Sequence record: OP617745.1
Length of the DNA: 64,000 nt
Reading direction: 5' to 3' (one strand)
Below the pieces are notes generated by a model. That model did not search any database, was not told the origin of the DNA, and saw nothing but the letters and a program-made list of their open reading frames with translations. Positions within the stretch are counted from its first letter, which is position 1. Each line of letters starts with the position of its first letter. The translations under genes were made by a program, and so were the position numbers. This document shows, piece by piece, positions 2,610 through 18,705 of this stretch.

Positions 2610-2945
2610 ATGCTGGAGTACATTAATCTGTTTGATACATCATTTGTTATAGTTAGTACTTATTATATTTGTAGTACTATATTCTACTTTCTGATGTGGT
2701 TCTTTAAACGTAAACTGGATAACTTCATTAAGCAATATTCGTTACAACTGGCATTACAATTGTATTACTGGATTGGATTTGGTTTAATGTATTTGCATTA
2801 CTATTTTGTATTATATAATATCCGTGAAAATAATACATTTATGCTTTATATGCTACAAATTATCGGTACTACAATCTATGTAGGTTATCTAATGTCGATT
2901 GTACTGTCAAAATTAAGAAACAAAATCCCTGATATGAGGAATTAA
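2610..2945 (+). CDS. small multi-TM membrane protein
   Basis: Hydrophobic; C-terminal RNKIPD resembles the first two paralogs. Confidence 0.75.
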   Translation: MLEYINLFDTSFVIVSTYYICSTIFYFLMWFFKRKLDNFIKQYSLQLALQLYYWIGFGLMYLHYYFVLYNIRENNTFMLYMLQIIGTTIYVGYLMSIVLSKLRNKIPDMRN

Positions 2946-2948
2946 AAA

Positions 2949-3254
2949 ATGACATATATTTTTATTGCATTAGCAATGTATTACTGGATTTCGTGGACTG
3001 GATATCTCTTTGCATTAAAATCTTTTGATTATTTCAGTGCTTCCTGCAAAGAAAGTTGGGGATGGCATGTAATGGCAACTTCGTCAGTAACATACTGTGC
3101 TTATGAAAGCATCACTGATAAGACATTCAATGATATTGTATTGAGTACAGTACTGATGTATTTGTGGAGTTTTGCATTTATTGTTCATATTTCACCTTTA
3201 ATTAGAGATAAAATTGTAAAATTTCACAATAAACAAAAGGAAAAGCGTACATGA
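2949..3254 (+). CDS. small multi-TM membrane protein
   Basis: Hydrophobic; basic tail KFHNK. Confidence 0.75.
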   Translation: MTYIFIALAMYYWISWTGYLFALKSFDYFSASCKESWGWHVMATSSVTYCAYESITDKTFNDIVLSTVLMYLWSFAFIVHISPLIRDKIVKFHNKQKEKRT

Positions 3255-7240: not shown

Positions 7241-7300
7241 AAGAATGATTCAGTACTATTAAGAATGATTAAGTACTATTCAGTACTATTCAGTACTGAT
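7241..7300. repeat. tandem 10-bp-register repeat rich in AGTACT
   Basis: aagaatgatt cagtactatt aagaatgatt aagtactatt cagtactatt cagtactgat. Confidence 0.8.
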
Positions 7301-7579
7301 ATGCCACTAAGTCCGTTTATAAAGTCGCACCCAGTGGGCTACATTTGTAACTATTCAGTACTGAATAATTCAATGCATATATTATTTCAGTACTTAATCA
7401 TTAGCAAACTATTAATTTCAATATCTCCTTTAGATAATATTTCGTATCTTATATTAACAAAAATCTGAATAGCATGTCAAGAAAAATCTGGATTACCAAC
7501 GAGAAAAAATCTGGATTTTAAAAATTTTGAAATGTCGTTTATAGTTCAGGAAAAAAATGAAATTATAACAAGAAAATTG

Positions 7580-8114: not shown

Positions 8115-8232
8115 GAGTGAGAATGATAATGATTCTCATTTGAATTGGATGAGAACGATTCTCATTTACAGTTGCAAATGATAATAGATTGCATTTACGA
8201 ATGGTTCTCATTCGCAGATGATAATGATTCTT
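8115..8232. promoter_or_regulatory. array of about 5 Fur-box-like sites
   Basis: GAGAATGATAATGATTCTC at 8119-8137 (16/19 to GATAATGATAATCATTATC), TGAGAACGATTCTCA at 8150-8164, and further AATGATAAT units. Confidence 0.7.
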
Positions 8233-8376
8233 GAATTTTTTCCATTAGCTAGACTACCCCGTAGGATATATAATATCCTGGAGTATCTGCTTAATTTTTC
8301 AAAATCTGGATTAATAATATCAGTACTATCCAGGATATGCAATACCCAAAACAAAAATAAATTCTAAAAAAATCTA

Positions 8377-8405
8377 TTGACATAATATTCCAGTACTGTC
8401 ATAAT
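8377..8405 (+). promoter_or_regulatory. sigma70 promoter, left arm of a 33-bp inverted repeat
   Basis: TTGACA-17-CATAAT. Confidence 0.8.
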
Positions 8406-8411
8406 ATAAGC

Positions 8412-8459
8412 AAGTCAGAAAAATGACGTTTGCCCACAGGGTGCGGAGGAACATCTATT
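8412..8459 (+). ncRNA. two-hairpin RNA motif copy
   Basis: GTCA-GAAAAA-TGAC then GCCC-ACA-GGGT GCGGAGGAACATCTATT. Confidence 0.55.
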
Positions 8460-8463
8460 AAAT

Positions 8464-8482
8464 GAGAATGATAATCATTTAC
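8464..8482. promoter_or_regulatory. Fur box at the centre of the convergent cassette
   Basis: GAGAATGATAATCATTTAC, 16/19 to consensus. Confidence 0.7.
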
Positions 8483-8489
8483 AATATTG

Positions 8490-8533
8490 AATAGATTTCC
8501 GCACCCTGTGGGTTAAGGAATTTCGCTTCCATG
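8490..8533 (-). ncRNA. two-hairpin RNA motif copy
   Basis: Reverse complement: GGAA-GCGAAA-TTCC, ACCC-ACA-GGGT GCGGAAATCTATT. Confidence 0.55.
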
Positions 8534-8539
8534 TAAAAC

Positions 8540-8567
8540 ATTATACAGTACTGGAATATTATGTCAA
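8540..8567 (-). promoter_or_regulatory. sigma70 promoter, right arm of the inverted repeat
   Basis: Reverse complement TTGACA-16-TATAAT. Confidence 0.8.
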
Positions 8568-8632
8568 TAGATTTTTTATCTGAACAAATTATTTTTTTGT
8601 TATATAATTACATATAAAAAAGGATTAAATTT

Positions 8633-9160
8633 ATGGTATGGAAAACACTTAAAGAAAATGATTTATATGAAATAGATGAATATGGAAATATTAGAAATAA
8701 ATCAACTATGCTAATAAGGAAAACTTCATTAAATGAGAATGGATATAAACAAATTATATTATCGTACAAAGGGAAAATATCTACTTATAAAATACATAGA
8801 TTAGTAGCAAATAATTTCCTTGCTCCACCAACAAAAGAGCAATTAGAATGGGCTAAAACTACAAAATATAAAGTTGTTCAAGTAAATCATAAGGATGGAA
8901 ACAAATTAAACAATCATAAAGACAATTTAGAATGGAATACTAATAGTGAAAACATGATTCATTCTTTTAAAAATCTTAATAGATTTAGACCAGGAAAAGG
9001 AAGTTCAAATATTAATAGTAAGCTTACAAAAGAAAATGAAAAATTTATATTGACTAATTATAAAAAGCGTGATAAGAAATATGGATTAGAAGCATTGGCG
9101 AGACAATTTAATGTTAGTGCAACAACTATTGCAAGATGCATTAATAATAATAAAAAATAA
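8633..9160 (+). CDS. NUMOD4/HNH homing endonuclease
   Basis: WKTLKENDLYEIDEYGNIRN (NUMOD4); HRLVANNFL...VNHKDGNKLNNHKDNLEW (HNH). Confidence 0.9.
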   Translation: MVWKTLKENDLYEIDEYGNIRNKSTMLIRKTSLNENGYKQIILSYKGKISTYKIHRLVANNFLAPPTKEQLEWAKTTKYKVVQVNHKDGNKLNNHKDNLEWNTNSENMIHSFKNLNRFRPGKGSSNINSKLTKENEKFILTNYKKRDKKYGLEALARQFNVSATTIARCINNNKK

Positions 9161-9486: not shown

Positions 9487-9714
9487 ATGGCTATAGAAGT
9501 TAACGCTGGGGATATAAAGGCGGCTGTACTGCGTACCCTGAAAGCATACGGCAGAAAGCTGAATGATCGCAACGTTCCCTATTATTTCCTTGCTGCTACT
9601 CATAAAATGGCAATCGCTGAGGCTCGCGGCTGGCTGAATGATCGCAGTACTGTAAAGAGTACCAGAACAAGAAACGCAATTGAGCGATGGATAAAAGAAT
9701 TAAATCATTTCTAA
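9487..9714 (+). CDS. hypothetical early protein
   Basis: ORF track. Confidence 0.75.
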   Translation: MAIEVNAGDIKAAVLRTLKAYGRKLNDRNVPYYFLAATHKMAIAEARGWLNDRSTVKSTRTRNAIERWIKELNHF

Positions 9715-9787
9715 TAGTTCAGTTAAGGGATTCAGTACTGATTCCCTGTTCAGTACTGAAATTATAAGGGGAGTTAATTAATTCCCC

Positions 9788-9802
9788 TTTACAAATCTTT
9801 AC
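9788..9802. promoter_or_regulatory. CpxR-like box (TTTAC-N5-TTTAC)
   Basis: Reverse complement GTAAAGATTTGTAAA, 10 nt upstream of the -35 at 9813. Confidence 0.55.
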
Positions 9803-9812
9803 AAAAGAATGG

Positions 9813-9895
9813 TTGACATAGTATTTCAGTACTGGTATTATGTATTCATAGACAGAACAAGTCTTTGACCCACCGGGTGCGGAGGAGTATCTATT
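9813..9895 (+). ncRNA. promoter plus two-hairpin RNA motif copy
   Basis: TTGACA-17-TATTAT; AGAC-AGAACAA-GTCT; ACCC-ACC-GGGT GCGGAGGAGTATCTATT. Confidence 0.55.
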
Positions 9896-9904
9896 AGATT
9901 GAAT

Positions 9905-9923
9905 GAGAATGATAATGATTCTC
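9905..9923. promoter_or_regulatory. Fur box
   Basis: GAGAATGATAATGATTCTC, identical to 8119-8137. Confidence 0.7.
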
Positions 9924-10161
9924 ATTTACTGTACTGAATATATTCCAGCACCCTTTTTGGGCTTTTCGATTTCTCTCTACTTGTTAATAAGTATACCATA
10001 ATCAGTACTGAATGCAATGCTCTTTACAAATCTTTACAAAAGAAAATAATTATAAAAAGTACTGAAAAAGTATTTGACGTAATAATGTAGTACTGGCATA
10101 ATACATCCATACCAAACAACAAAGGGAATCAGTACTGATTCCCTGTTAAGGAGTAACTAAA

Positions 10162-10449
10162 ATGTTTAATGCTAATGATCATATTGTTAAAGAGTTTTCT
10201 TTCAGTAAGCCGGTGCATTTAGAAAACGGTGAAACGCTGGACAATAAATTTTATGGTAGTATTATTAAGCGTTATACATCGCGTAGCAGTACTGGAATTT
10301 TGTGGGAAGTGAATAAACAGTACAATGGTAATTCGCTGGTTGTCAATGAGTGGGAAAGTTATGCAGTAGCTGAAATGGATTTTTCTAACTTCATTACTGA
10401 ATCTTTGAACGATGATATTTTTTACAAGTTCACAGCGGAAAGGGTTTAA
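10162..10449 (+). CDS. hypothetical early protein
   Basis: Own promoter, leader palindrome, SD. Confidence 0.8.
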   Translation: MFNANDHIVKEFSFSKPVHLENGETLDNKFYGSIIKRYTSRSSTGILWEVNKQYNGNSLVVNEWESYAVAEMDFSNFITESLNDDIFYKFTAERV

Positions 10450-10576: not shown

Positions 10577-11188
10577 ATGAATGTTATCGATACTATCTAT
10601 TCTAAATCTTTTGATGAATTGGATTCAGTACAGAAGAAAAAAGCAATTGATATTATGCGGGATCTGGAACGCCACGATTCAGATCCATTCTGGGCACAAT
10701 TAATTAATGAAGATAAACGCGAATTAATGAATAATGAATATGGTTTTACTGATACTGTAATTCATTATAGCGGCTTTTGCTCACAAGGTGACGGGGCGTC
10801 AATTAGTACTGAATCAATCGCCGCCGAGACGTTTTTACGCAAAATTAAAGCATGGTCGAAATTCCGTGTATTGCATAAACATTTCAATGATGGTACAATT
10901 ACATTAAAGATCGAACGCAACGATCATCGTTATTCTCATGAAAATACTGTTTCTGGTGTGGTGGATCTGGACTACGGCACTGAATTCACTGCTAAACAGG
11001 AAGAGAAAGCGGACGAACTGGAAACGCTTTTGACTGAAACTATCCGCGATCTTTCTCGCCAGCATTATCAGGTTCTGAGCGATGAAAACGATTATCAAAA
11101 TAGTGATGAAGCATTGATTGAATCGATTAATGCAAATGATTATAATTTCAAAGTTAATAGTACTGGCGACGTGTTAGGACTTGCATAA
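10577..11188 (+). CDS. conserved phage protein of unknown function (SGFxSQGDGA motif)
   Basis: HYSGFCSQGDGAS and C-terminal SDEALIESINANDYNF, recalled as a recurrent phage family. Confidence 0.75.
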   Translation: MNVIDTIYSKSFDELDSVQKKKAIDIMRDLERHDSDPFWAQLINEDKRELMNNEYGFTDTVIHYSGFCSQGDGASISTESIAAETFLRKIKAWSKFRVLHKHFNDGTITLKIERNDHRYSHENTVSGVVDLDYGTEFTAKQEEKADELETLLTETIRDLSRQHYQVLSDENDYQNSDEALIESINANDYNFKVNSTGDVLGLA

Positions 11189-13046: not shown

Positions 13047-13061
13047 GTAAAGAAGTGTAAA
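13047..13061. promoter_or_regulatory. CpxR-like box
   Basis: GTAAA-GAAGT-GTAAA, 10 nt upstream of the minus-strand -35. Confidence 0.55.
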
Positions 13062-18599: not shown

Positions 18600-18705
18600 T
18601 TTACAAATCTTTACAAAACCAGTACTTGATTTAATTATTGAGTACTGGTATTATATATTCATTGGCAGATAAGCCGTGACCCACAGGGTGCCGAGATGTA
18701 TCTAT
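18600..18705 (+). ncRNA. CpxR-like box plus promoter plus two-hairpin RNA motif copy
   Basis: TTTAC-N5-TTTAC at 18600-18614; TTGATT-17-TATTAT; GGC-AGATAA-GCC; ACCC-ACA-GGGT GCCGAGATGTATCTAT. Confidence 0.55.

Follow-up and report, generated by a model that had tools for sequence, protein, structure and literature searches.

The stretch of DNA analysed here (the window, 64,000 nucleotides (nt)) comes from the Klebsiella jumbo phage KP13-7 (Alcyoneusvirus; OP617745, 357.7 kb), and the element in question is a cassette at 9813-10017 in which an early promoter (P+) followed by a short RNA motif faces a second, degraded arm of the same build on the other strand, with a Fur-type site between the two. 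In the related phage Muenster the homologous stretch (2297-2566) is inside a 20,030-bp terminal repeat predicted with PhageTerm. The predicted genome end corresponds to about position 7452 of the window, and the cassette is thereby placed some 2.4-2.6 kb into a terminal repeat of about 20 kb. From 8.3 to 26.3 kb the window is dense with small plus-strand genes, each preceded by a sigma-70-type promoter bearing the palindrome CAGTACTG in its spacer; this promoter family has about 30 members, and P+ belongs to it. The features in and around the cassette are listed in Table 1.

Table 1. Features identified in and around the cassette, in window positions.
Feature	Position	Strand	Basis or detail
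Terminator hairpin of upstream gene (open reading frame (ORF) 9487-9714): GC stem then T-run	9768-9787	+	sequence reading; invariant in five genomes
Left 23-nt direct repeat copy with TTTAC-N5-TTTAC (9788-9802)	9787-9809	+	box 10 nt before the -35 of P+
Early promoter P+, sigma-70-type: TTGACA 9813-9818, 17 nt, TATTAT 9836-9841	9813-9841	+	consensus scan
Non-coding RNA motif, intact copy	9839-9900	+	model R1, 51.7 bits, E 2e-11
Two overlapping Fur-type boxes, 6 nt apart, within 9-bp inverted repeat	9905-9929		19-nt consensus, 16/19 twice
RNA motif, degraded copy	9928-9990	-	model R1, 26.0 bits, E 5e-4
Putative weak promoter P-: TTGCAT 10017-10012, 16 nt, TATACT 9995-9990	9990-10017	-	alignment to minus-arm promoters
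Right 23-nt direct repeat copy with TTTAC-N5-TTTAC (10023-10037)	10022-10044	+	sequence reading
Own promoter of downstream gene (ORF 10162-10449)	10074-10102	+	promoter scan

The plus arm is intact, and the promoter at 9813 and the motif behind it that an earlier, sequence-only reading had described are both present. P+ matches the consensus at 11 of 12 positions, has a TG before its -10 (an extended -10) and carries CAGTACTG in its spacer at 9827-9834. Its hexamers are invariant in six genomes, and transcription is predicted to start near 9848. The motif consists of a first hairpin (hairpin 1, AGAC/GTCT) and a core hairpin of the form RCCC-loop-GGGT, followed by GC and a conserved tail; the core CCCACNGGGTGCGGAGG has seven matches with at most three mismatches in the window, against 0.00 expected from shuffles. 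We scored the motif with a covariance model (R1) built on 13 copies from KP13-7, fENko-Kae01 and vB_Ec-M-J, from which both arms of the 9813-10017 cassette were excluded. With all filters off, R1 returned ten intact copies (40.7-60.3 bits), the degraded minus arm at the score given in Table 1, and nothing else in the window above 15.1 bits. Family members were recognised by a promoter whose start falls 2-10 nt before hairpin 1, a hairpin 1 of 3-5 bp with a purine-rich loop, and a score above about 37 bits with the core RCCC-(3-4 nt)-GGGTGC; the plus arm has the near-consensus promoter directly upstream, hairpin 1, the core and the score.

Comparison of 31 aligned copies showed covariation in hairpin 1: changes on both sides fell in 40 cells, whereas shuffles gave 15.7 +/- 3.1 and none of the 500 reached that count, with an alignment that was fitted to the model and leans towards the structure. 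The pairing collapses once one partner is slid by a single column. In the core stem there is one compensatory change, CCT/AGG, in a locus of the CBB-type phages, and about a quarter of the strong R1 copies are without hairpin 1. Rfam 15 gave no family at gathering threshold in the 64 kb, and only noise from 9700 to 10150 (11-19 bits, with cut-offs of 37-180); no tRNA genes were found. The RNA motif is undescribed, and there are about ten copies of it per terminal repeat; its range covers RaK2-like phages of Klebsiella, Escherichia, Salmonella, Cronobacter and Erwinia/Pectobacterium. A divergent motif-like copy at 7307-7367 on the minus strand (core GCCCACTGGGTGC, promoter 7407-7379), which R1 does not detect, lies just outside the predicted start of the repeat and is conserved in all relatives.

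Between the arms, the Fur consensus is matched at 16 of 19 positions both at 9905-9923, where the sequence-only reading had recognised a single Fur box, and at 9911-9929. Matches of this quality number four in 64 kb, against 0.21 expected, and all of them fall between 8.1 and 9.93 kb. The 40-nt cassette centre was searched against all complete Escherichia coli genomes, and its best chromosomal matches were intergenic. The Fur box is identical over 19 of 19 nt to a site upstream of E. coli gpmA, 26-44 nt before that gene, and the region just upstream of mntH shares 26 of 30 nt with the cassette centre. The gpmA site, at 27.4 bits, is tied as the strongest Fur site of the genome and has been confirmed by gel shift, and overlapping sites at 6-nt spacing are typical of Fur clusters (PMC2189734). 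Judged by its sequence, the centre of the cassette is a top-class Fur-type site. In relatives the box scores 16/19 in K64-1 and 17/19 in RCIP0023, and falls below 15/19 in OU509535.

The Fur-type boxes go with the convergent layout. Boxes of at least 14/19 were found after 10 of 12 convergent arms and after 1 of 29 solitary copies in four genomes (Fisher p 6e-7), a count to which the two arms of a cassette contribute non-independently. The single solitary copy with a box is a minus arm, that of a unit described below (unit B), and it is really convergent, its partner lying below the score threshold. In the cassette the box is centred at about +66 relative to the plus start and at about +69 relative to the putative minus one; the values are +61 and +60 in a second cassette at 8367-8577 (cassette 1). 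The Fur box overlaps no predicted promoter, and its position is not the usual one for Fur repression, in which the box overlaps the -35 and -10. A search for a phage-encoded Fur-family protein was negative in Muenster, fENko-Kae01 and vB_Ec-M-J and positive in the control genomes, and the protein binding the box would therefore be host Fur.

The minus arm was described in the sequence-only reading as a degenerate motif behind a plausible promoter TTGCAT-16-TATACT, and both parts of that description hold. Its score lies clearly above noise and clearly below the intact copies, so that the element is a true homologue and truly degraded. The core hairpin is retained with a loop enlarged to five nt (AAAAA), and hairpin 1 is lost, with no stem predicted. 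Relatives have a 4-nt loop and the 3' flank GGGTGCGG; KP13-7, alone among the aligned genomes, has GGGTGCTGG in its place and an extra T, at 9954, which is absent from five aligned relatives and from the contigs of three of four sewage runs. Under R1 the relic scores 33.7 bits in Muenster, RaK2, RCIP0023 and OU509535, 32.9 in K64-1 and 26.9 in phiKp_21, and so lies at 26-34 bits, degraded, in each of the seven Alcyoneusvirus genomes. Because it is degraded in all phage genomes examined and only KP13-7 has the further changes, the decay of the minus arm is old and has gone furthest in KP13-7.

The putative promoter of this arm, P-, fails a simple consensus scan, with 3/6 matches in the -35 and 5/6 in the -10. 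It has TGG before the -10 (a TGn extended -10) and CAGTACTG at 10003-10010, and its two hexamers line up with those of the intact minus promoters in cassette 1 and in the Muenster unit B. The hexamers are invariant in six genomes, and the two substitutions of P- are both in the spacer. The putative promoter is weakened but not destroyed, with a start predicted near 9983.

The cassette is bracketed by the two copies of a 23-nt direct repeat, each holding a perfect TTTAC-N5-TTTAC, the reverse complement of the CpxR consensus GTAAA-N5-GTAAA. CpxR-like boxes had been noted outside both ends, and they are there; they are direct and not mirrored, however, except in phiKp_21. Because both boxes have the one orientation of the repeat, the cassette is not mirror-symmetric at the level of the boxes. 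The right-hand repeat, 5 nt outside the minus -35 and 36 nt before the next plus promoter, has its box in the wrong orientation for the minus promoter, as in unit B, and phiKp_21 alone has an inverted, correctly oriented box 11 nt upstream of the minus -35. There are four such boxes in the window against 0.66 expected. Three of them sit 10-12 nt before a motif promoter (the left-hand box, 13047-13061 on the minus strand, and 18600-18614) and the fourth is the right-hand box; an Asteriusvirus motif promoter likewise has a box 10-12 nt upstream. Among the relatives 1 of 24 columns varies in the left box and 0 of 24 in the right. We consider these boxes candidate CpxR sites or UP-like elements, and UP-like A/T-rich elements have been proposed for RaK2-like promoters (PMC5259590).

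The T-run of the terminator of the upstream gene overlaps the left box. On the other side, P+ and the promoter of the downstream gene form a tandem-promoter layout, with a hairpin of the family found in 5' untranslated regions (UTRs) at 10123-10144 behind the second promoter, and the order promoter, motif, promoter, gene is likewise found in GAP32- and CBB-type phages. In the 64 kb there are 96 occurrences of the palindromic octamer CAGTACTG, against 0.41 expected, with the highest density at 7.3-27.3 kb. Nearly all early promoters have it in their spacer, where it provides the extended -10 with its TG; it is also present in the loop of the recurrent 5'UTR hairpin (e.g. 10123-10144) and next to Fur boxes. 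It has the look of an operator for some phage or host regulator.

The window is 100% identical to KP13-7, and RaK2, K64-1, Muenster, RCIP0023 and OU509535, all Alcyoneusvirus jumbo phages, are 92-97% identical to it. The sequence-only reading had proposed a comparison across related phages, with a lack of conservation to count against it, and the cassette is kept: all six other Alcyoneusvirus genomes examined have it, these five and, in part, phiKp_21. It is also spanned by contigs of four sewage-metagenome studies; the public runs with this stretch (sewage libraries labelled RNA-Seq, and unlabelled runs) are stored as contigs and are probably DNA, and they give presence and variants. Searches of the literature turned up neither transcript mapping for an Alcyoneusvirus or Asteriusvirus nor an earlier description of Fur boxes in jumbo phages.

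In most Alcyoneusvirus genomes the first 2.6 kb contain four elements related to Fur. One is a gene-less array of Fur boxes. The others are unit A, with a box, a Fur box and a minus arm alone, unit B, in which a Fur box lies between a plus and a minus arm and a box comes last, and, two to three genes further, unit C, which is the 9813-10017 cassette. KP13-7 has, instead of units A and B, the one perfectly symmetric cassette at 8367-8577, with perfect arms of 33 nt. It adjoins ORF 8633-9160 (+), which encodes a 175-amino-acid HNH homing endonuclease (Pfam NUMOD4, HNH_3; phrog_59, 9e-35). This gene has no match in Muenster or phiKp_21, in three of four sewage runs the contigs cover little or none of it, and its presence coincides with the swap of units A and B for the symmetric cassette. 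The 9813-10017 cassette is therefore the universal one, at a conserved position, and the perfect cassette at 8.4 kb is specific to KP13-7, beside an inserted HNH gene. In phiKp_21 (1437-1670) the plus promoter and motif of unit B are joined to the Fur centre and relic of unit C, the genes between having been deleted. Because this deletion and the HNH insertion of KP13-7 both have their borders in cassettes, the cassettes are recombination substrates. Muenster has at 1037-1424 two Fur-box cassettes that KP13-7 lacks, with a variant core in the minus arm of unit A, and a coding sequence annotated across its unit B (CPT_Muenster_001, 1304-1456) is probably not a gene.

Identity between the relic and other arms is 70-78% (z 9-12) along some 100 nt that extend beyond the motif, and the centre of the K64-1 cassette is the same as that of cassette 1 of KP13-7 across the plus-motif tail and the Fur box. 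The sequence-only reading was right in seeing at 9813-10017 a second cassette built as that at 8367-8577 with one arm worn. What it took for an independent recurrence of the 8.4-kb layout is paralogy, and because the arms are paralogues, a second copy in one genome is by itself no sign that the layout is selected.

Gene order offers better evidence, because a convergent cassette precedes the orthologues of one downstream gene in three genera. This gene, ORF 10577-11188 (+), belongs to phrog_5162, is annotated as a YeeU-like antitoxin in relatives, and served as the anchor downstream of the cassette. A single-protein scan of IMG/VR with it returned RaK2 only, and an alignment-based scan gave 305 confirmed relatives, many on much smaller phage contigs. 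Its orthologues in fENko-Kae01 (58.6% identity) and in the Asteriusvirus vB_Ec-M-J (41.9%) each have a convergent cassette before them. The fENko-Kae01 cassette has both arms intact (57 + 55 bits) around a 14/19 Fur-like centre; that of vB_Ec-M-J has arms of 46.3 + 29.7 bits, perfect promoters on both sides, TTTAC-N5-TTTAC upstream, and no Fur box. The loci of RaK2, a 359.8-kb relative and 121Q also have the convergent layout upstream of the phrog_5162 gene. The claim that the layout is selected and not accidental consequently loses the argument from the second copy and keeps one from recurrence at the equivalent gene-order position in three genera. fENko-Kae01 has a further cassette at 7249-7386, 7.3 kb into its terminal repeat, which is convergent and fully intact with a 16/19 Fur box; ENKO_016 and ENKO_017 are annotated across it.

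In the GAP32- and CBB-type phages there is a plus arm only, 110-180 nt before the gene and directly before the gene's own promoter. It is the plus arm that is deeply conserved; the facing arm characterises the phage lineages of Klebsiella, Escherichia and Salmonella. Because the facing arm is degraded here, the GAP32- and CBB-type phages have the plus arm only and unit A of relatives is without a plus arm, a facing arm is dispensable.

A coding reading of the cassette was rejected: a 32-codon plus-strand ORF from 9902 and a 68-codon minus-strand ORF at 9719-9925 are both broken by indels of 1, 11 and 31 nt in relatives. RefSeq has two minus-strand hypothetical proteins (gp413 and gp414) across the cassette of K64-1 (2666-3007), and the indels speak against their being genes. 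A long hairpin is one possible fold of the full plus RNA (-37.8 kcal/mol, z -4.25), and a selected long-range pairing of the arms was considered and set aside: the two arms of one cassette differ in hairpin 1, loop and tail across genera, and so they evolve as separate local hairpins.

Taken together, we favour, tentatively and at somewhat less than even odds, a reading of the cassette as a non-coding regulatory unit in which arms made of an early promoter and a short structured RNA face each other across an operator for host Fur. Host RNA polymerase would start at P+ and make a two-hairpin RNA of about 50 nt. Iron-loaded host Fur, 60-70 nt past each start, would act as a roadblock or insulator that stops transcription out of the motif, and it would also prevent polymerase collision or the formation of antisense RNA. 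At low iron, with Fur off the DNA, plus transcription could read on towards the promoter at 10074 and the downstream early genes. In this cassette transcription would be essentially one-way, with no more than a weak antisense start from the relic; read on the plus strand, this arm is a GC stem followed by T-runs and may help to end the plus RNA.

Several observations weigh against this proposal. Fur normally covers promoters, and E. coli Fur clusters that lie between promoter and gene repress little (PMC2189734), so that the roadblock may be weak. The equivalent Asteriusvirus cassette is without a Fur-type box (best match 9/19), and the convergent layout can therefore work without Fur. No consensus intrinsic terminator was called on the plus strand of the cassette. 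There is no G-U bias in the stems of hairpin 1 (one G-U only; sense versus antisense energy p 0.55), which leaves the fixed orientation behind promoters as the argument for the strand on which the RNA acts. Finally, 9 of 91 columns vary in the relic versus 6 of 85 in the plus arm and about 5% in flanking genes, too few to show selection on the relic; the variable columns make up 5-10% in all parts except the centre, where they come mostly from an 11-nt deletion in K64-1.

In a first alternative, both arms are active and form a true convergent pair, with a transcript overlap of about 135 nt and a Fur-gated switch by interference or antisense RNA, the decay only retuning one arm. P- keeps its TTG, the TGn extended -10 and TATACT, in hexamers that do not vary, and -35 variants such as TTGCAA and TTGCTT occur in working-looking promoters of the region. 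The box of phiKp_21 is correctly oriented 11 nt from the minus -35, the loss of hairpin 1 is shared with about a quarter of strong copies, the Asteriusvirus minus arm reaches only 29.7 bits yet has a perfect promoter, and the Fur box is symmetrically placed. However, the -35 of P- has 3/6 matches and fails the consensus scan, the minus motif is 15-34 bits below intact copies in every genome, KP13-7 has further changes in the most conserved core, and it is the plus arm alone that more distant genera retain. We regard activity of both arms as rather unlikely.

The clustering of the Fur-type boxes admits a second alternative, at the level of DNA. Here the boxes, the array at 8115-8232 and the other cassettes would recruit or soak up host Fur on the first-entering end of the genome, either acting as a decoy, with host iron uptake derepressed, or building a nucleoprotein structure, and the promoters and RNAs would be incidental. 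Fur-type sites crowd into the first 2.6 kb of the repeat, where all four 16/19 matches of the 64 kb lie, and a gene-less Fur-box array adjoins. They match the top class of Fur sites in E. coli, the phage itself encodes no Fur, and the substitutions among relatives exchange Fur-compatible hexamers. A pure decoy, however, leaves unexplained why single boxes lie midway between facing arms and only there, and why the box of unit A stands at the usual distance from the surviving arm; Asteriusvirus, moreover, has the cassette but no Fur-type box of at least 15/19 anywhere in its terminal repeat. This explanation appears improbable. Also improbable is that the layout is a functionless by-product of recombination, in which mobile promoter/RNA modules form facing pairs by inverted insertion and then decay, as the clean phiKp_21 recombinant (unit B plus arm with unit C centre), the replacement of units A and B in KP13-7 by a symmetric cassette and an HNH gene, the K64-1 centre that looks converted to the cassette-1 type, the arms lost in unit A and in the 9813-10017 cassette, and the 23-nt direct repeat bracketing the latter would all suggest, because three genera retain the convergent layout at one position with respect to the phrog_5162 gene and so tight and symmetric a link to a Fur box is unexpected from scars.

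The regulatory unit proposed here can be compared with several known systems. Among the T4-type phages, promoter-early stem-loop (PeSL) cassettes combine early promoters and stem-loops as modules (PMC2839356, PMC4122927). The likeness lies in near-identical modules of early promoter and hairpin among the small early genes of a large lytic myovirus, and in the borders of indels and replacements between relatives, which fall in the repeats (the phiKp_21 deletion and the KP13-7 HNH insertion). The cassette differs in having a dedicated two-hairpin motif of about 55 nt with an invariant core after the promoter in place of a terminator stem-loop, in units that in some cases face each other with a host-repressor site between them, and in its location in a long terminal repeat. 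The composite that defines PeSL, an early promoter overlapping a terminator stem-loop, was not found in the cassette, whose motif is no terminator.

Face-to-face promoters are known from coliphage 186 (pR/pL), P2 (Pe/Pc) and plasmid pCF10 (prgQ/prgX), where two promoters 60-230 bp apart point at each other and an operator falls within the overlap or close to it. Transcriptional interference and antisense RNA decide the outcome of these switches, which control protein-coding operons for lysis/lysogeny or conjugation through a repressor that the element encodes. Convergent promoters with an operator in or near the overlap are common to these systems and the cassette, whereas the cassette has short non-coding RNAs as both of its putative products, a putative operator for host Fur and one degraded arm. 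As at ryhB, a top-scoring Fur box adjoins a gene for a short non-coding RNA; at ryhB and gpmA, as at most Fur targets, however, the box overlaps the promoter, while here it lies 60-70 nt past the predicted start or starts with no promoter over it, and the cassette RNA has no match to RyhB or to another Rfam family.

Hairpins of the leader RNA also act in antitermination, as in boxB of the lambda nut sites and in HK022 put. Short hairpins with purine-rich loops directly after early promoters, in several copies per genome, recall these elements, as does the unit just upstream of the gene's own promoter in GAP32- and CBB-type phages. The cassette is, however, without a boxA-like sequence, and no N-like gene was identified; since several copies meet a terminator at once or face another copy, antitermination does not fit. 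In the Pseudomonas jumbo phage PA5oct, two ORF-free stretches of the terminal repeat (ncRNA001 and ncRNA002) account for 1-5% of phage reads (PMC7318152), and these resemble the cassette as transcribed ORF-free stretches in the long terminal repeat of a distant relative of the RaK2 group. They were considered as homologues and rejected, since there is no relation in sequence or structure (best R1 score 14.2 bits in the 40-kb repeat).

The first kilobases of a jumbo phage terminal repeat are usually treated as filler made of hypothetical genes, and our comparison points instead to a conserved non-coding control region that combines the covarying RNA motif, Fur-type sites of the top class and promoters facing each other. 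The repeated cassettes explain gain and loss of genes between strains, and they flag mis-annotated ORFs. A more far-reaching and doubtful idea is that in giant enterobacterial phages host Fur acts as a roadblock between facing early promoters on the first-entering end of the genome, so that the iron status of the cell would set both the length and the amount of a family of short phage RNAs and the read-through into early take-over genes. Within that iron switch the 9813-10017 cassette would be, equally speculatively, a conserved and half-retired member. If Fur does bind, this would be a clear case of a virulent phage that ties its early programme to the iron status of its host, and it would be relevant to Klebsiella phage therapy in the iron-limited tissue of the host.

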